From the IMG/VR virus record IMGVR_UViG_3300027793_000052, positions 1 to 64,000 of that record: a stretch of 64,000 bases of DNA; one strand, written 5' to 3'. Below are positions 4,786 to 63,098 of this stretch, in pieces (the stretch's first letter is position 1; each line of letters begins with the position of its first letter). The notes beneath the pieces were generated by a model that was given only the letters and a program-made list of their open reading frames with translations, was not told where the DNA came from and searched no databases. Position numbers and translations under genes: made by a program.

Positions 4786-5256
4786 ATGGGGGACTTAATG
4801 TCCCCCTATTTATTTTATAGTGATATTATATTATTATTATATTCCGTGGTAAAGACGGAATATTTTTCATTTCTCAAGTACAACCGATTCAAATTTGGTA
4901 AACAGGAGGTTTCACAATTTGTAATTTTTGAGTTTAAGTGGTTGTTTTCAATAATAATTTTTTATTTTCATAAGTGTGATGATTCACAAGATAGGTTTCA
5001 TACTCACGCTTTTAATGCCCTATCATTTAAACTATTTGGTCAATATGATGAACATATATTAGATGATGAATCTAATGGTTCCTATCATACAGAACGTAGA
5101 ACACAAGTGGTAAAATATTTCCCTAGGGATTCTTATCATCGTATAGCAAACAGTAATGGTTGTTGTACTTTGTTGTTATCAGGCCCATGGAAAAAACATT
5201 GGAAGGAGTATGTTGACGGTAATGTAATACATTATACTTGGGGTAGAAAGAAATAG
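4786..5256 (+). CDS. Cupin-like hypothetical protein
   Basis: RFHTHAFNALSF ... YHRI ... TLLLSGPW pattern. Confidence 0.45.
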   Translation: MGDLMSPYLFYSDIILLLYSVVKTEYFSFLKYNRFKFGKQEVSQFVIFEFKWLFSIIIFYFHKCDDSQDRFHTHAFNALSFKLFGQYDEHILDDESNGSYHTERRTQVVKYFPRDSYHRIANSNGCCTLLLSGPWKKHWKEYVDGNVIHYTWGRKK

Positions 5257-5309
5257 TTTGATTTTAATTTTTTATACACTATATTTGTGGTTAATAAAAA
5301 CAAACAGTC

Positions 5310-5993
5310 ATGGAAAAAGTAACATTAGAAATTCGAGCCGCTGAGGGTGGTGAAGATTCGAAACTCCTTGTGGAGGACATGGCTGCAGTCTATCTGAAAG
5401 CAGCCAAGAATAAAGGTTTTACCGTAGAGTCCGAACATTGAAGAGACGGACTTGTTAGTATTTAGCTGACAGGTAAAGGGGTTAAGAAATACTTCCAAAA
5501 CGAAGTTGGTTGTCATAGATGGCAAAGAATTCCACCCACTGAAAAACGTGGTAGAGTACATACAAGTACAATTACAGTAGCTTTATTAGATTCCCAAAAT
5601 TATCAGGAGATAGACATCAATATGGATGAATTACGTATTGAAACAACTCGTGGTACAGGTAATGGTGGTCAACATAAGAACACAACAGATTCTTGTGTGG
5701 TTATAACCCATATACCAACAGGGATAAAAGTGGTTAGAGATGGTAGAAGTCAACATAAGAATAAGGACGAGGCTTTAAACGAAATAAAACAACGTCTAAA
5801 TGATTTATACCAACAAAACCATATGGATAAAGTTTCTAAAGAAAGAAAGGGTCAAATCGGTAGTGGTAATAGGGGTTCTGAAAAGAAACGTACCTACAAC
5901 CAAAAAATGGATTTGGTTATCGATCATGAAAGTGATAAGTCTACAAGTCTTAAACAATTCATGAAAGGTAAATTAGAACTATTAATGTGTTAA
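5310..5993 (+). CDS. Class I peptide release factor homolog (RF1/PrfH-like, no N-terminal domain) with in-frame UGA and UAG
   Basis: EIRAAEGGED, HRWQRIPPTEKRGRVHTS (PxT) and GGQ all in one frame; stops at 5439 (TGA) and 5463 (TAG). Confidence 0.8.
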
Positions 5994-30868: not shown

Positions 30869-31259
30869 GGGGGTGACTTGGAATTGATTGGCTACATTAG
30901 TTATTGTAAAAGCATGTCGAGACTTGTTTGTAGGCTCGTTAAACCAACAATCAAAATTTTAAATGGCGACATTTTCGCAGACGCTACTGTAGGTCACTTT
31001 GTGACTGAAGGTGCAGAGGTTGTAGCCTAATTAGATTAGGGTACACAACGGGGTTGGATTACCTAGGAACAGAAGTCCAAAAAAGGGTGTTACCACTACC
31101 ACAAAAGGGTAAAGTCAAACATGGAATGTGTCAACTAAGTCCATGGGAGAACTAAAAGATGAAGTTGTATATTTTGGGTGGTTAGAAAACCACATCCTAA
31201 ACATGTAGAAGACTTTAATTCATTAGAACAAGACGGCGGTTCGACCCCGCTCACCTCCA
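30869..31259 (+). ncRNA. ssrA: tmRNA
   Basis: GGGGGTG/CACCTCC-A acceptor with G3-U70, GCATGTCGAG after helix 2, GACGGCGGTTCGACCCCGC T-arm; tag ORF 30965-31030. Confidence 0.92.
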
Positions 31260-31292
31260 CTTTAGAAATTTATTAACCTAAAAATCGAAAAA

Positions 31293-35419: not shown

Positions 35420-35546
35420 ATATTAATAAATATATCTTTTTTAATTAAAATTAAAGATTATGTTAAAAAATAGTGTGGAGGATATATAGTACAGATGTTA
35501 CAAGATATTTATTGAAACAATAAGTCTCAATTAAAACTGATTGATT

Positions 35547-36149
35547 ATGGATATCGTAAAAATTATGTTACTTGGTAGCGGTTACGATGTAACGAGAGGC
35601 ATTGTCACAAAGAAGAATTACAAAAAAATTAAAAATTCTTCAACTCTCGATAATGTATGGATTAAAAAGTTAGGAAAAAAAATAGAAAAAAATTTTACAG
35701 GATTTAAAACAGAATTTAATGATTATGGAATATCAAAAGGTGATTTAATAATAGAAGTAAACGGCGAAGAATTTGTAAATATACCAATAAGTGTTTTAGA
35801 AGATTATACATTTAATAATGTTGAACTAATGGAATTGGAAGGGTATCAATATCCTTCAACAGATGGTGTTGTTGTAACGTCTGTACAAGAATTATATGGT
35901 GTTTTTATGGATGTAATATTTGTAACTTCTGAAAAATTTGATGTCACAAAGTTTAAATTTATTAAAAAAGAAATACAAGACGAAAAAGAAGAAACTTTAT
36001 TTAATTTAATTTCTGAAGTTTACTATGATGAAGAGTTAATTAAATTTGAGGGTGATAACACAGATTTACGTATGTCAAATGTTAACTTTGATATAGGTAA
36101 AAAAGAAAAAGTTTCAAAAAATGAAAAAGACGATAATAGACAACTTTAG
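35547..36149 (+). CDS. Hypothetical protein
   Basis: ORF track. Confidence 0.5.
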   Translation: MDIVKIMLLGSGYDVTRGIVTKKNYKKIKNSSTLDNVWIKKLGKKIEKNFTGFKTEFNDYGISKGDLIIEVNGEEFVNIPISVLEDYTFNNVELMELEGYQYPSTDGVVVTSVQELYGVFMDVIFVTSEKFDVTKFKFIKKEIQDEKEETLFNLISEVYYDEELIKFEGDNTDLRMSNVNFDIGKKEKVSKNEKDDNRQL

Positions 36150-36348
36150 GATTAACGATAACGTTTTAATAACAAGTTTTAACCCACCTTTGGAGGGTAG
36201 AATAGCTGACATGTATGAAATGGAACCAAATATGATTGGTGATCCTACTTTAACAAAAATGTATCCTAAAATGGTACCAATTATTGAGGTGATATTGAAA
36301 GACGGTAAGTTACGTTCTTTTGTGAAAGATGTTGTAAAAAAGGTTTAA
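36121..36348 (+). CDS. Hypothetical protein
   Basis: ORF track. Confidence 0.45.
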   Translation: MKKTIIDNFRINDNVLITSFNPPLEGRIADMYEMEPNMIGDPTLTKMYPKMVPIIEVILKDGKLRSFVKDVVKKV

Positions 36349-36350
36349 AT

Positions 36351-36442
36351 CTTTCGTTTATGGGTTTCATACAACTTCAATATATTCGTTTAGTGTTACT
36401 TTAACCGCTGTAGATACCTTTCGTTTATGGGTTTCATACAAC
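36351..36442. CRISPR. CRISPR-like mini-array A (1 full and 1 truncated 36-nt repeat, 31-nt spacer) overlapping an ORF 3' end
   Basis: GCTGTAGATACCTTTCGTTTATGGGTTTCATACAAC at 36407-36442; identical 25-nt part at 36351-36375; 32/36 identical to the array B repeat. Confidence 0.5.
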
Positions 36443-37347
36443 ATACGCACGCAGATTTTCTGAAATTCTGGGTATTCTACCCCCATTTCTTTACATTTTA
36501 ACCATATTTTATCATAATCTGCATATAAAACCGGTTTCTGATCACCAGTATCTATGTTATCTAAAAATAAAAAATCCCCATTTTTATCAATATATTTTGT
36601 CCATCCTGGTTGTTTTTCTGATTCTACCAATTCACAATCCATTAATTTTTCCATAATAAACCCCTCACATGGGGATAATTCCGGAACATCATTAACCCAA
36701 TCAAATTCTTCTTCGTTTTCTTTTAACCCTTTTTTACTTTTCATTAAGTTCTTTAAAACGTAAGAACCGGCTGATAATGATATACCCATCATAAGTTCAT
36801 CTAAGTTATCAACACTAAAACCTTTTTCTGATGCAATATCTTTTAAAGTATTTAAAATCGGAACTGACATAAAAGTAAAAGACAACACATCAATTAAAGT
36901 TGTTATAGTAACACCAATCTTCATACCTATAGTTTTAAATAAATTAATACTGGCATTCATAAATTTGACAACGCCCTTTAACTCTTCATTTAGTTTACGT
37001 TTTTTTAATTCAGAAATTAATTTTTTTAAATCTTCTTTGGACTTAGATGTCAAAATGTAAACTGCTGTCATAACCAAAAGTGTTGCATCATATTCGGTTA
37101 TGTTTATGTTTTTATTATGTAATAATTCTATAACAGGCCCAGAAAAAGCACTAATACCTAAACCATAAGTTAACATAAAGTCAGCATTGATTTTCATATC
37201 GTTAATAACTTTTTTAATTATAGGTTTACTACTTGGTATACCACCACTACCTTCATTAATTATTTTTTCATACATCATGTGAACTTGACCTTCCATGTAC
37301 ACACGTTCAGTTAATAAGTTTAACGATAATTTTGATAAGTTACTCAT
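36367..37347 (-). CDS. Two-module protein: membrane module plus array-associated module ending in repeat/spacer-coded peptide
   Basis: LKENEEEFDW junction; C-terminal module paralogous to 48217-48675. Confidence 0.65.
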   Translation of the reverse strand: MSNLSKLSLNLLTERVYMEGQVHMMYEKIINEGSGGIPSSKPIIKKVINDMKINADFMLTYGLGISAFSGPVIELLHNKNINITEYDATLLVMTAVYILTSKSKEDLKKLISELKKRKLNEELKGVVKFMNASINLFKTIGMKIGVTITTLIDVLSFTFMSVPILNTLKDIASEKGFSVDNLDELMMGISLSAGSYVLKNLMKSKKGLKENEEEFDWVNDVPELSPCEGFIMEKLMDCELVESEKQPGWTKYIDKNGDFLFLDNIDTGDQKPVLYADYDKIWLKCKEMGVEYPEFQKICVRMLYETHKRKVSTAVKVTLNEYIEVV

Positions 37348-57269: not shown

Positions 57270-57692
57270 ATGGTGAACAGGAAAGTTAGGTTTAATTACG
57301 ATATATTAGAAGAATATAAGGCAGGTATTGTTTTAATAGGTTCTGAGGTTAAGTCTATTAAATCGGGTGATGTCAGTGTCGACGGGTCTTATTGCTTCTT
57401 CAAGGACGGTGAGTTGTTTATTAAAAATATGTACGTCAAACCATATGAAAGTTCAAGAAATGATTTAGACCCAAGACGTGATAGAAAATTACTTCTTAAA
57501 AAAAAAGAAATTAAAAAGTTACAAATAGCTCTTAGTGAAAAAGGTTTAACTATAATACCTTTGGCTTTAAAAAATGAAGGTAGAATAAAAGTTATAATTG
57601 GTGTTGGTAGAGGTAAAAAAATATACGATAAAAAAGAAACAATAAAAGAACGTGATATAAAAAAACAATTAAAGAAAAATTATGAAATTTAA
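57270..57692 (+). CDS. smpB: SsrA-binding protein SmpB
   Basis: NRKVRFNY..AGIVLIGSEVKSI, DPRRDRKLLL, GRGKKIYDKKETIKERD. Confidence 0.95.
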   Translation: MVNRKVRFNYDILEEYKAGIVLIGSEVKSIKSGDVSVDGSYCFFKDGELFIKNMYVKPYESSRNDLDPRRDRKLLLKKKEIKKLQIALSEKGLTIIPLALKNEGRIKVIIGVGRGKKIYDKKETIKERDIKKQLKKNYEI

Positions 57693-59477: not shown

Positions 59478-60020
59478 ATGAAAAAATTATTATTATCTTT
59501 ATTATTACCCCTGAATTTATTCGCCACTGATTTTGTATATTTAGTCGGACAAGAATGGCCCAATAATAATATATCCGGAAATTACAGTTCAGATACAGTT
59601 CAGATAAGTGTTACAAATTTTGACAAATTAATTGTACGTAATGTCGCCACGTATGGTATTGGGTGTAGTATAAATGGGTTTATAGTAGATGGTATGGCAC
59701 AGTCAGAGGCAAGATTATTTGATTTTACTAATGATAACCTAAGTGACACCAAACAATTTGTATTTTTTGATGGTAATAATGTATTTGTTGTAAACGTATT
59801 AATTATTGACGTTATTACAAACGTTAGATATGTAAGATTATTTAACCATCCAAACTTTAAGTCAGAACTACAAAACTCAAATGTATATGTCGTTGATATA
59901 TTTGGTAATATTATCTACATGGGTGATGGAAATAAATTAGATATCATCAACATATCTGACTATGGTATTGGTATGTATATATTGATGATTAACAATAAAA
60001 AAATTAAAATTATAAAATAA
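59478..60020 (+). CDS. Secreted protein with T9SS type-A-like CTD
   Basis: Signal peptide; VYVVDIFGNII..ISDYGIGMYILMI..KIKIIK. Confidence 0.55.
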   Translation: MKKLLLSLLLPLNLFATDFVYLVGQEWPNNNISGNYSSDTVQISVTNFDKLIVRNVATYGIGCSINGFIVDGMAQSEARLFDFTNDNLSDTKQFVFFDGNNVFVVNVLIIDVITNVRYVRLFNHPNFKSELQNSNVYVVDIFGNIIYMGDGNKLDIINISDYGIGMYILMINNKKIKIIK

Positions 60021-60102
60021 CGGTTGATGATAAACAATCGTTTTAATGTTGTTTATCATTTGTTATATTCAGTTTTTATTAGTATATTTGTAAAAAAATA
60101 AA

Positions 60103-60402
60103 ATGATTAAAGAAATTAAAAAATGGGTATTGTTTAATATTTTGAAAGGTAAAGCACATCTTTTAAGATTCAAACATTTTTTAAAAACAGGAAGAGACAT
60201 TGAAATGTTACCACCACCACAAAAAGATTATGCTAGAGCTTATTTTTTTGAAATAGAAAATGGTGATTATGTTTTAAAACATCATGAAATTCCGTCAAAT
60301 TTCATAGAAAAGTTCCACGAAGACTTCAATAACAAAAATGGTAAGTTAATGGGTTTAACAAGGGAACAAGTGGTTAGATGGGTTGTAGAAAATAAAAATT
60401 GA
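60103..60402 (+). CDS. Cassette ORF 1, hypothetical
   Basis: Bounded by GTTATATTC (60062) and GAATATAAC (60401). Confidence 0.55.
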   Translation: MIKEIKKWVLFNILKGKAHLLRFKHFLKTGRDIEMLPPPQKDYARAYFFEIENGDYVLKHHEIPSNFIEKFHEDFNNKNGKLMGLTREQVVRWVVENKN

Positions 60403-60459
60403 ATATAACGATACTCAGATATATTTCAGGTTTCTGATATTTATATATAAAACAAAATT

Positions 60460-60708
60460 ATGAGCAAAGAAATGAGAAAATACATAGACACTTTCAAACA
60501 GAGACTAACTGAATCAGAAAACTTGAATATATCTGATGTTAGTGATAGTGAGTTATTCACTTTACAAGATATAAAAGACGCTATTACAATAGCGTTCAGA
60601 TGGGGAAAACCTATTGGTTGGGGCGAAGGTCCTGAAAAATTTGATGAGGAGGAAAAGAATGTCTTTAACGAGATTATCAAGGAATTAAGAATTAGGAAAA
60701 GTGAATAA
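60460..60708 (+). CDS. Cassette ORF 2, hypothetical; start lies inside the attC-like site
   Basis: GTTAGTGATA (60538) with TATCACTAAC (60715). Confidence 0.5.
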   Translation: MSKEMRKYIDTFKQRLTESENLNISDVSDSELFTLQDIKDAITIAFRWGKPIGWGEGPEKFDEEEKNVFNEIIKELRIRKSE

Positions 60709-60962
60709 ACTAATTATCACTAACGTTTGCAAATATGAGAAGTAAATTTTTCCTCTAAGATTTGGTAATCTAAAATTTATTTCTTATATTTGTTGTTATA
60801 AGTAGTGTGTGGGTGATTAACCCCGCATCGGAAGATTAACTAATAGTGGTGAAAATCCACAGCGGGGTCAATGTCATCTACACACATTACTTATAACGGT
60901 TTCGGGCTTTGCGTTCGGCAGGGCTTATGGAAACGGATTTATCAACTTAAAAATAAATAACA

Positions 60963-61250
60963 ATGGAAAACGAAAACTTAAATTTGAACGAAACCCCTGC
61001 TGACGCAAAACCCGTGTTAGGCGATGTTTTCCCTTCGGGTGGAATTGACCTTGTTGGGTACAATGTAGAATATTGGGTAAGAAGTCCAAAAGCAACTTTT
61101 TTAGCTAAAGGCTTAATTGTGTCTTACAGCAAAAAGGGCAAACATGGGAAAGGGTCTTATTCGGGTGGTGTTTATGTAATTAGATGCGGTAAAAGGACGT
61201 TTTCAAAGAGAAGATGTGAATTTACGGTGGTGTCTAAAAATATCGCCTAA
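60963..61250 (+). CDS. Cassette ORF 4, hypothetical; start lies inside the attC-like site
   Basis: GTTAGGCGAT (61016) with ATCGCCTAAC (61242). Confidence 0.5.
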   Translation: MENENLNLNETPADAKPVLGDVFPSGGIDLVGYNVEYWVRSPKATFLAKGLIVSYSKKGKHGKGSYSGGVYVIRCGKRTFSKRRCEFTVVSKNIA

Positions 61251-61297
61251 CTATTATATATAAACAAGTATAGGTTAAACCATTTAAAATCAATTAA

Positions 61298-62099
61298 ATG
61301 AACCAAAAAATTATAAAGATTTGCGAAGAAAAGTTTATATACTTAAATTACTCTCCTCGAACAAAAGATAATTATTTAAGTCACATTAAAGACTTCCTAA
61401 AATCTCTGGGAGATAAACAAGTCATTCATTGTAATTCAAAAGATTTCCAATCTTACTTAGATAACTACAAATTTACCTCTATTTCACAACAAAACCAAGT
61501 TATTAACTCAATCAGATTTCTCTACAAATTCGGTCTAAATAAGAAATACGATAAAGTATCTTTCAAACGACCCAAGTCAGAAAAGAAGTTACCAAAAGTA
61601 ATTGATAATGATTACATTATAGAGTGTCTATCGAAGATAAATAATTTGAAGCATAAATCAATATTATCTTTGTCGTATTCGGTTGGTTTGAGGGTTTTCA
61701 GAAGTTGTTAATCTTAAGATAGAAGACATTGATTCTAAAAGAATGATAATCCATATCAAAAACGCTAAAGGTAGAAAAGATAGGGTAGTCCCCCTTTCTC
61801 AGAACATCTTAGAATTATTAAGAAGTTATTACAAAGAGTTTAGGCCAATTGATTTTTTATTTAATGGTCAAAATAACTTAAAATATAGTACTGGCAGTTG
61901 TAACCAAATTGTTAAAAAATACTTAGGTGAAAAATATCACATTCACCAATTAAGACATAGTTGTGCAACAAACCTATTGGAGAATGGTACAGACCTAAAA
62001 TTAATTCAAAAAATATTAGGTCATTATTCAGTTAAAACTACAGAAATATATACACATGTCTCAAATCAATTATTGTCAAAGGTAAATCTTCCTATTTAA
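61298..62099 (+). pseudogene. Tyrosine recombinase (IntI/XerD-like) split by a 1-nt frameshift
   Basis: YSVGLRV then, after an extra T at about 61694-61697, SEVVNLKIEDID..KGRKDR..HQLRHSCAT..LGHYSVKTTEIYTHV. Confidence 0.85.
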
Positions 62100-62389: not shown

Positions 62390-62701
62390 ATGTCAACAAA
62401 ATTCAAATTCAATAACGGTAATATGGCATTAGTATGTTCTTCTTGTGGGAGGATACTAAAAACAGGCGGTGAGTTTACAGAACAAGAATGGAGGTGTTTA
62501 AACGGTGAGGTAGATTTAGGTGATAAGTATTGTTCTGATTGTGAAGATAATGTTAAACCTGAAGATAAAACTGGTGATAACATGATGTCAAATTTAGAAC
62601 ATATAAAAAATATTTTACCACATATTAGGAATGATGAAAATTTTCAGTTAAATTTGTTAAATAGTTTAATGAAAAAAATCAAAAATGATAAACAATCGTA
62701 A
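62390..62701 (+). CDS. Zn-ribbon hypothetical protein
   Basis: CSSC...CSDC. Confidence 0.5.
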   Translation: MSTKFKFNNGNMALVCSSCGRILKTGGEFTEQEWRCLNGEVDLGDKYCSDCEDNVKPEDKTGDNMMSNLEHIKNILPHIRNDENFQLNLLNSLMKKIKNDKQS

Positions 62702-63098
62702 ATTTAAAACAAACTTATTAATAACAATTTTTAATTTCTTATTTGGAATAAGTTTGTTTGGTCAAAATAGTTATGTTGTACTAAAATATAGTAATATTAA
62801 AATAGTAACTCCTACCGATACAACAATACACAAGATACAAAATTATTTTTATTTTAACGAATGTTCTTTTGTTATATCTTCACAATCAACAAGGGTTTAT
62901 GATATTCTAATACCTTCTGTAAATGAATTTGATGTTACAGGTGTTAGGGTATTACAAGATACTGGTGTGAAGTTGGAGGATGGTGGTGTGATTTATGAGG
63001 CACCAATGCATAAGAGACAAGTTGCAGTTTATTTTAGTGAAGGTTTAACCGAATTAAAAATAATGAGAAAAGATAAAACAGGTGTTATATTTTATTAA
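62685..63098 (+). CDS. Secreted hypothetical protein
   Basis: Hydrophobic N-terminus. Confidence 0.45.
   Translation: MINNRKFKTNLLITIFNFLFGISLFGQNSYVVLKYSNIKIVTPTDTTIHKIQNYFYFNECSFVISSQSTRVYDILIPSVNEFDVTGVRVLQDTGVKLEDGGVIYEAPMHKRQVAVYFSEGLTELKIMRKDKTGVIFY

Follow-up and report, generated by a model that had tools for sequence, protein, structure and literature searches.

The window, a stretch of 64,000 nucleotides (positions 1 to 64,000 of the IMG/VR virus record IMGVR_UViG_3300027793_000052), belongs to a giant freshwater phage and carries four small gene cassettes beside a tyrosine recombinase gene, all on the plus strand. From 60018 to 61297 the sequence alternates TAAC and GTTA junctions. 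Four imperfect palindromes starting with TAAC and ending with GTTA, here called P0 to P3, were located at 60018-60065, 60406-60541, 60721-60798 and 60894-61019 (48, 136, 78 and 126 nt), separating four bodies whose ends are complementary. The elements listed in the initial annotation, which had described an integron-like cassette array, were thus confirmed, although some coordinates and match lengths had to be corrected.

When folded as single strands, all four palindromes were predicted to pair part or all of TAAC with GTTA in the minimum-energy structure. The z-scores against shuffled sequences were -3.3, -2.5, -5.9 and -1.35, so the fourth fold is not significant on its own. The end matches of the bodies turned out to be longer than initially annotated in two cases: 60062-60080 pairs with 60391-60409 over 18/19 positions (9/9 had been given) and 60538-60554 with 60708-60724 over 15/17 (10/10 had been given). 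The remaining pairs are 60795-60811 with 60881-60897 (16/17) and 61016-61030 with 61237-61251 (14/15). The whole window holds 13 inverted repeats of at least 15 nt with at most 1 mismatch within 450 nt, against about 6 in shuffles. Three of the 13 lie in this 1.2 kb, and only those three begin with GTTA and end with TAAC. All four pairs share a feature that had been missed: position 11 is G in the left arm and A in the reverse complement of the right arm. Moreover, T precedes GTTA in all four, while G follows TAAC in three, and in the fourth the attI-like T follows.

Cassettes and recombinase gene of the window

The array starts with P0, which has the loop TCGTTTTAATG and overlaps the stop codon of ORF 59478-60020. 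The same palindrome type recurs at 90-96% identity in several copies in relatives, and it was about 100 times deeper than the unique DNA in sequencing run X5. Body 1 (60062-60409) holds ORF 60103-60402, coding for 99 aa of unknown function, and a TATATTTG box at 60083; cassette 1 spans 60022-60409. Homologues of body 1 at 86-88% occur as ordinary genes without such ends in five other loci (L176-L180). P1 contains the start codon (60460) and the first 26 codons of the next gene, and it is conserved at 76-93% in the related viral contigs L004, L005 and L006 in front of different bodies. Body 2 (60538-60724) holds the rest of ORF 60460-60708 (82 aa, unknown function), cassette 2 being 60410-60724.

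P2 has a near-perfect 21-bp inner stem, with a TATATTTG box at 60785. The body that follows it (60795-60897, 103 nt) contains no ORF and is itself one long predicted hairpin (z = -5.6), which makes cassette 3 (60725-60897) an “empty” cassette. Relatives also have bodies of 69-72 nt, and 61-nt ones were found in Polaribacter phage Freya. P3, with a G+C-rich stem, contains the start codon at 60963, and body 4 (61016-61251) holds the rest of ORF 60963-61250 (95 aa, unknown function); cassette 4 spans 60898-61251. Pfam, NCBIfam and protein atlas searches gave no function for the three cassette proteins. A nucleotide search of the region against 50,697 phage records returned one unrelated short match. 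Rfam searches, both at gathering threshold and at E up to 5, gave only chance microRNA-like hairpin hits, so that no known RNA family matches the palindromes or the empty cassette, and no attC match was obtained for this region.

The array is followed by a fixed attI-like site and recombinase leader (61248-61297), in which TAAC is followed by TATTATATATAAACAAG. The final site of the initial annotation (61245-61280) exists, but it is not a significant hairpin (z = 0.08). It is instead conserved as sequence next to the recombinase gene: the stretch following the last TAAC, TATTATATAT, is conserved in 66 distinct relatives whatever cassette precedes it.

The recombinase gene (61298-62099) lies in two frames (61298-61711 and 61743-62099), split by one extra T in the run 61695-61698. 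It encodes a Pfam SAM-like N-terminal domain plus a catalytic domain. Only this lineage was frameshifted among the relatives checked. The frameshift is real and present in five independent datasets, the same allele being found in runs X2, X5 and X11 and in contig L172. The array of the window is therefore probably no longer shuffled by its own enzyme and most likely represents a frozen product of the system; it was collinear in all samples seen, and nothing shows activity in this phage.

The enzyme belongs to the Xer/IntI clade, its nearest profiles being XerA-type and IntI, and all catalytic residues were conserved in 14 diverse relatives. As initially annotated, it lacks the IntI-specific insertion. 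Intact relatives scored 155-162 bits on TIGR02249 (cut-off 265), in two stretches, and below the XerC, XerD and XerA cut-offs. In the comparison against IntI4 (2a3v), query residues 178-209 face chain residues 180-259, so about 48 residues are missing.

Recurrence, covariation and turnover of the units in relatives

Eighty related viral loci were analyzed. End pairs starting with GTTA and ending with TAAC numbered 275 in 278 kb upstream of the recombinase gene and 16 in 425 kb downstream. Two such downstream pairs, in locus L001, lack the signature and are chance. The shared form is GTTA-N6-G-T, preceded by T, at the left end and A-T-N6-TAAC, followed by G, at the right end. The stem is paired at positions 1-15 and is at background from position 16, and position 11 is a G.T wobble in 204 of 224 cassettes. 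The paired ends form a defined stem of about 15 bp with conserved G.T wobbles and not a 7-bp core. When end motifs were picked without regard to pairing, N6 was complementary at 6/6 positions in 147 of 228 consecutive left-right pairs, against 3.3 with shuffled partners, and 97 distinct N6 were found.

The mobile unit was found to be the palindrome plus the body to its right, running from just after one TAAC to the next TAAC. Contig segments L004:452-888 and L046:3309-3745 are 99.8% identical, the identity starting at the preceding TAAC and stopping at the cassette's own TAAC, although the recombinases of the two phages are only 66% identical. Similarly, cassette 4 of the window has a 75% homologue confined to exactly this unit, with an identical 15-nt end pair but different neighbours, in another phage's array (L173:2430-2789). 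The alternative unit, a body plus the palindrome to its right, was rejected by these unit-exact homologies. Start codons do lie inside the palindromes, as initially annotated (60460 and 60963 here, and 82 of 210 cassette ORFs in relatives), but a start codon in such a position belongs to the same cassette as the rest of its gene.

Gene order was not fixed across relatives, and the ends behaved as cassette ends, which supports the initial interpretation of a non-canonical cassette-shuffling system. Cassettes at 100% identity stand in different orders in contigs L020, L021 and L034, and three of nine groups with at least 98% identical recombinase genes differ in the proximal cassette. Ten cultured isolates of Polaribacter phage Freya differ only by blocks of such units, joined precisely after AAC to a conserved site beside the recombinase gene. 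Every junction reads AAC followed by ACCCCTATAAC, and in Freya_9 the two breakpoints share only AAC. No recombination product was seen directly, in a search limited to one raw-read run with almost no coverage (X22, 15 partial reads) and to Logan contigs, which cannot show rare circles. The short joints listed from contigs have sides of 18-24 nt and come from other arrays sharing the palindromes, and zero depth left of 60006 in other runs proves nothing.

An integron-like platform and its alternatives

These observations are best explained by a cassette platform that works like an integron, a reading to which a probability of about 0.78 can be assigned. Each unit usually holds one small gene reading towards the recombinase gene. 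In the proposed mechanism, which is inferred, the two ends of a circular or single-stranded cassette form a stem that continues through an asymmetric internal loop into the palindrome hairpin, giving an attC-like folded site. Its sequence would be free but its shape fixed, together with the GTTA/TAAC core and two G.T wobbles, next to the core and at position 11. Accordingly, joining each cassette's own ends gave one continuous predicted hairpin of -20 to -30 kcal/mol, against -9.5 to -17.6 in array context. The wobbles exist on one strand only, which would mark the reactive strand. The strand polarity follows the site and not transcription: in bacterial relatives the mirrored ends number 63 downstream and 1 upstream, and there the wobble strand is antisense to the cargo genes, as in integrons, whose bottom strand is the reactive one. 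The adjacent recombinase would cut after the AAC core, excising units and inserting them at the fixed site beside its own gene. However, in integrons the IntI insertion reads the extrahelical bases of folded attC, and recognition of a folded strand by an enzyme lacking it cannot be assumed by homology.

As in integrons, a tyrosine recombinase gene sits next to a fixed site, followed by an array of small, mostly single-gene cassettes with imperfect palindromes of variable length (about 40-200 nt, with two shorter outliers) and free sequence, although whether these qualify as attC sites remains open. The cores resemble RYYYAAC / GTTRRRY with the crossover inferred at the AAC/GTT core, the start of a cassette is complementary to the outer part of its own palindrome, the site is strand-asymmetric, turnover is concentrated next to the fixed site, and cargo such as DNA methyltransferases is carried. 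Read on the other strand, the layout is the classical one, with the recombinase gene pointing away, the fixed site, and then cassettes each ending in its palindrome. What is inverted is the cargo genes: 210 of 224 cassette ORFs read towards the recombinase side and many start inside the palindrome, so no shared Pc promoter is possible. Further differences are the missing IntI insertion and the outer stem of about 15 bp with two G.T wobbles instead of a 7-bp R box. The hosts are phages of Bacteroidota, whereas IntegronFinder surveys report almost no integrons in Bacteroidetes (PMC9024848). The arms do not fit Xer/dif recombination, including pdif modules, which requires two conserved 11-bp arms around a 6-8 bp spacer read as duplex DNA, since only GTTA/TAAC and positions 0, 11 and 12 are conserved.

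Clusters of attC without integrase (CALINs) have been reported in phages (Qi et al. 2023, PMC9892861). Their P12002L_attC1 is the same palindrome type as P0 (TAAC-GG-stem-TCGTTTTAATG-stem-TT-GTTA), the flanking genes there are DNA methyltransferases, and Polaribacter phage P12002L also has a few bodies with the position-11 signature. These sites were treated as stray integron attC sites, and no dedicated recombinase, 15-bp cognate ends or cassette turnover were reported. P12002L_attC1 was predicted by HattCI alone, and P12002L_attC2 by HattCI plus INFERNAL. P12002L_attC1, the only experimental test of this palindrome type, was the one site for which recombination was not verified, although the enzyme used was the foreign IntI1. 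No description of the present system was found in literature that lacked most subscription journals, so a prior description cannot be excluded.

Alternatively, the palindromes could be promoter/terminator stem-loops repeated between small genes, like the PeSL motifs of T4-type phages, with genes shuffled by ordinary homologous recombination and the neighbouring recombinase being only a lysogeny integrase. PeSL-mediated shuffling and mini-circles are documented (PMC2839356, PMC4122927), and PeSLs likewise bound small accessory genes in a hyperplastic region and carry expression signals, and gene content differs between close relatives. The palindromes fall into a few repeated types at 90-100% identity and are 5-100 times deeper than the unique DNA. 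Repeated palindromes could also support homologous recombination, and some breakpoints in L020, L021 and L034 lie in 48-nt repeats that could recombine in this way. In addition, Bartlau et al. read the Freya integrase as a sign of a temperate lifestyle (PMC8776804). Nevertheless, this explanation is unlikely. The Freya breakpoints share only AAC with the fixed site, and PeSLs, thought to act through homologous recombination, have no dedicated recombinase, cognate end pairing or fixed insertion site. It does not explain why each body's own ends pair over 15 nt with free sequence, a fixed length and a conserved wobble, nor why arrays always abut the recombinase gene in more than 60 phage lineages and in bacteria.

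It is also improbable that the pairing acts in RNA, each unit being a transcript whose ends pair for stability or processing, with the palindromes as terminators and DNA mobility as incidental. In the phages the wobble strand is the sense strand of the genes, Bacteroidota-type -7 boxes (TAnnTTTG) lie near two of the GTTA junctions, and a metatranscriptome run holds the region, though this does not prove transcription. However, in the bacterial relatives the mRNA would carry A.C mismatches, the -7 box was found near the junction in only 3 of 106 palindromes, and RNA pairing does not explain unit-exact transfer between phages. Finally, independently invertible segments, suggested by inverted repeats next to a tyrosine recombinase, weak profile matches to FimB/FimE-type invertases, an N6 unique to each cassette (as with incompatible lox variants) and ORFs starting outside the body that inversion would truncate, are the least likely, since all 58 pairs of homologous bodies found in different loci are in the same orientation, 210 of 224 ORFs are co-directional with the recombinase gene, isolates differ by insertions and deletions of whole units, and the left and right ends differ systematically at position 11.

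A broader possibility, somewhat more likely than not, is that a second, so far unrecognised class of integron-like gene-capture platforms exists, using short Xer/IntI-like recombinases without the IntI insertion and folded sites defined by a 15-bp cognate stem with two G.T wobbles. It would be common in phages of Bacteroidota (more than 200 viral contigs, including jumbo phages and the cultured Polaribacter phages Freya), with a mirrored form in chromosomes of Bacteroidota, Desulfitobacterium and in genome bins labelled Nitrospirae. Phages would use it to swap self-expressed accessory genes, and an “integrase” gene in such phages would not indicate lysogeny.

Integrons are regarded as a bacterial device tied to one enzyme family that carries a special insertion. 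A parallel system with a simpler enzyme would show that cassette capture through shape-defined sites arose, or persists, more broadly, and would give a natural comparison for how folded sites are recognised. The finding explains why many viral contigs stop just upstream of this gene, as several did here. For phage biology, it offers a concrete mechanism for the rapid turnover of small accessory genes, including methyltransferases, an RNA ligase and an ADP-ribosyltransferase, and would also explain the 5-kb length differences among isolates of one phage species. It also warns against reading every phage “integrase” as a lysogeny marker.

Cassette array and recombinase gene in the window

The window is part of viral contig IMGVR_UViG_3300031787_000018, and the same phage also exists as a 317,983-nt contig from another sample. 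It is A+T-rich (30% G+C) and carries 22 tRNA genes, located between 2410 and 21688, together with a tmRNA and its partner protein SmpB (Pfam E = 2e-47) at 30869-31262 and 57270-57692, which is a complete trans-translation pair in a virus. The ORF just upstream of the array (59478-60020) displayed a weak match to the type IX secretion C-terminal sorting domain (E = 0.002, below the cut-off), a hint at a Bacteroidota host. The nearest cultured relatives of the recombinase were found in phages of Polaribacter and Cellulophaga. A Bacteroidota host in fresh water is therefore likely.

Between 60018 and 61297 the sequence is a chain of alternating TAAC and GTTA junctions. Four TAAC..GTTA stretches are imperfect palindromes (60018-60065, 60406-60541, 60721-60798 and 60894-61019). 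As single strands, all four were predicted to fold with part or all of the junction tetranucleotides paired in the minimum-energy structure. Three fold far better than shuffled sequences, while the fourth (z = -1.35) does not on its own. The four GTTA..TAAC stretches between them, termed bodies, have ends that pair over 18/19, 15/17, 16/17 and 14/15 nt, which is longer than the 9/9 and 10/10 given for the first two in the initial annotation. The whole window holds 13 inverted repeats of this quality, against about 6 expected. Three of them lie within this 1.2 kb and only those begin with GTTA. Three other 15-16-nt inverted repeat pairs with one mismatch (35489-35886, 36334-36737 and 62535-62889), flanking 320-370 nt each, lack the GTTA/TAAC signature and may be due to chance. 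Notably, all four end pairs share one systematic mismatch: position 11 is G on the left and A in the reverse complement of the right arm, which gives a G.T wobble on the + strand.

The ORFs 61298-61711 and 61743-62099 are the two halves of one tyrosine recombinase, with a SAM-like N-terminal domain and a catalytic domain, split by one extra T in the run 61695-61698. In contrast, every other relative checked is intact at about 266 aa, and the catalytic Arg, Lys, His-x-x-Arg, His and Tyr are invariant. The frameshifted allele is not an assembly error. Contigs from three other sequencing runs dated 2017 to 2024 (X2, X5 and X11), one of them carrying two SNPs, show no insertion or deletion there, and the independent 318-kb contig has the same split. 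The broken allele is therefore stable in nature. No slippery motif that would argue for programmed frameshifting was found, and we read the gene as inactivated. Consistent with that, all samples seen show a cassette order consistent with that of the window.

End signature, mobile unit and turnover in related viruses

A scan of IMG/VR with the C-terminal half of the recombinase revealed 204 relatives, of which 80 were kept. The palindromes recur upstream of the recombinase gene in several copies at 75-96% identity, while the DNA between them is unrelated. The first palindrome is very abundant across the community, since in run X5 the word depth at 60006-60106 was about 2458, against 18-25 for the cassette bodies and the recombinase gene. 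End pairs of the form GTTA..TAAC numbered 275 in 278 kb upstream of the recombinase gene and 16 in 425 kb downstream. The consensus was GTTA-(T/G)-N5-G-T preceded by T at the left end, and A-T-N6-TAAC followed by G at the right. Pairing holds for positions 1-15 and stops at 16, and position 11 is G.T in 204 of 224 cassettes. The base before GTTA is T in 97% and the base after TAAC is G in 77%, giving a second wobble on the same strand. In order to avoid circularity, left and right motifs were also picked without regard to complementarity. In 228 consecutive left-right pairs, N6 was fully complementary in 147, against 3.3 with shuffled partners, and 97 distinct N6 were found. This is covariation: the two ends of a body must match each other, but their sequence is free.

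In order to identify the unit that moves, homologous stretches in different arrays were compared. A stretch is 99.8% identical in L004 and L046, two phages whose recombinases share 66% of residues; it begins at the TAAC that precedes a palindrome and ends at the TAAC closing the following body. Similarly, window cassette 4 (60894-61251) has a 75% homologue in the array of another phage (L173) that is confined to exactly that span, with an identical 15-nt end pair but different neighbours. A cassette is therefore the palindrome plus the body to its right. This resolves the unusual placement, remarked on in the initial annotation, of start codons inside the attC-like arms, since gene and palindrome travel together. 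Read on the other strand, the grammar is the classical one, with the recombinase gene pointing away, a fixed site, and then cassettes each ending in its palindrome. The cargo genes, however, face the recombinase. Among 224 distinct cassettes the median body is 261 nt. In 210 the longest ORF is co-directional with the recombinase gene, 82 ORFs start inside the palindrome, and 7 have no ORF. The 136-nt palindrome type (60406-60541, with copies in the viral relatives L004, L005 and L006) encodes a conserved N-terminal peptide of about 26 residues, starting with an MSKEMRK-like motif, fused to unrelated C-terminal parts in different cassettes. On the other hand, the gene of cassette 1 (60103-60402) has 86-88% homologues in other viral contigs (L176-L180), where it is an ordinary gene with no paired ends. 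This may show how a gene looks before capture into a cassette.

Cassette turnover was evident among close relatives. Cassettes at 100% identity stand in different orders in three viral relatives (L020, L021 and L034) whose backbones are 97-99.6% identical. In three of nine groups with at least 98% identical recombinase genes, the cassette next to the recombinase gene differs. In contrast, the sequence after the last TAAC, which reads TATTATATAT, is conserved in 66 distinct relatives whatever precedes it. Many viral contigs end 50-350 nt upstream of the recombinase gene, at or near the array boundary, as expected if arrays are heterogeneous or repetitive.

The strongest evidence was obtained from ten isolates of Polaribacter phage Freya (MT732463-MT732472), whose recombinase is 37% identical to the family of the window. 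Their genome length ranges from 43,978 to 48,920 nt. Freya has the same grammar, with a GTTR core and the position-11 wobble, and the isolates compared differ only by blocks of cassettes upstream of the recombinase gene. Every variant joins a cassette end to the same fixed site, in which AAC is followed by ACCCCTATAAC. In Freya_9 the two breakpoints share only AAC, and Freya_6 holds a different cassette at the same place. Three bases of shared sequence exclude homologous recombination for these events. An HNH endonuclease gene follows the recombinase gene directly in all the Freya isolates looked at (4969-5592 in the Freya_10 locus, L081). The paper that described these phages took the integrase as a sign of a temperate lifestyle and did not comment on this region (PMC8776804).

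The enzyme family and its bacterial relatives

Intact relatives of the recombinase scored highest on the NCBIfam model named 'site-specific tyrosine recombinase/integron integrase' (XerA type), with 146-196 bits against a cut-off of 220. The integron integrase model came next, with 96-162 bits (155-162 for the window's own clade) against a cut-off of 265. Against IntI4 of Vibrio cholerae the alignment breaks where IntI carries its specific insertion, and about 48 residues are missing. The enzyme is therefore a member of the Xer/IntI clade but not an IntI by definition. It has been noted by Smyshlyaev et al. that their 'integron-like' subgroup includes members in which this insertion is not conserved (PMC8138268).

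A scan of one genome per species revealed 558 bacterial relatives, the best at about 45% identity. They come mostly from Bacteroidota, but also from Desulfitobacterium and from genome bins labelled Nitrospirae and other phyla. The seven complete ORFs with an intact start that were read are 368-384 aa, with one of 558 aa, and the first ~95-110 residues lie upstream of the recombinase domains and match no profile. Arrays lie just downstream of these genes: 63 end pairs with the mirrored signature were found downstream and 1 upstream, in 26 of 80 loci. In those arrays the cargo genes are co-directional with the recombinase gene and precede the palindrome, as in ordinary integron cassettes, and the wobble strand is antisense to them. 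The polarity of the site therefore follows the recombinase and not transcription, which argues against a purely RNA-level role. It also matches integrons, where the bottom strand is the substrate. IntegronFinder surveys report almost no integrons in Bacteroidetes and one in Firmicutes (PMC9024848), and these arrays seem to escape current tools.

Proposed mechanism, cargo and relation to known systems

Joining each window cassette's own ends in silico gave one continuous predicted hairpin, consisting of a ~15-bp outer stem, an asymmetric internal loop (for example GGTT facing TT) and then the palindrome. The energies were -20 to -30 kcal/mol, against -9.5 to -17.6 kcal/mol in array context. This mirrors in part the R box, unpaired spacer, L box and variable loop of attC. 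We propose that the recombinase recognises this shape on one strand, cuts directly after AAC, excises circles and inserts them at the fixed site. While the sequence comparisons show the unit boundaries, the covariation, the turnover and the transfer, strand folding and catalysis by this enzyme are inferred.

Homologous recombination at repeated stem-loops, as in PeSLs, may contribute, but it fails on the Freya junctions and on the covarying ends. A purely RNA role fails on the bacterial polarity. Inversion switches are not supported, since 58 of 58 homologous bodies share orientation. Chance is excluded by the counts above.

Parts of the system have been seen before and filed as stray integron parts. 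Qi et al. 2023 searched phage genomes for attC sites and reported clusters without an integrase, including two sites flanking methyltransferase genes in the marine siphovirus Polaribacter phage P12002L (PMC9892861). Their P12002L_attC1 is the same palindrome type as the 48-nt palindrome at 60018-60065 of this freshwater jumbo phage, down to the loop TCGTTTTAATG, and it was the one site for which recombination by IntI1 was not verified. P12002L has no homologue of this recombinase at E below 1e-20, and only a few bodies with the signature. In the literature searched, no report of the dedicated enzyme, the cognate 15-bp ends, the fixed site or the turnover was found.

Among the 63 largest cassette proteins scanned, four DNA methyltransferases, an RNA ligase, a 3'-5' exoribonuclease and an ADP-ribosyltransferase were identified. 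Most small proteins, including the three of the window, have no recognisable family. A role in host takeover or counter-defence is a reasonable guess, not a finding. The array is real, and its reading in the initial annotation as a non-canonical cassette-shuffling system is essentially right: the system is an integron-like platform of a variant kind. The copy in this window is probably a fossil, but its family is widespread and, in Freya, evidently active.
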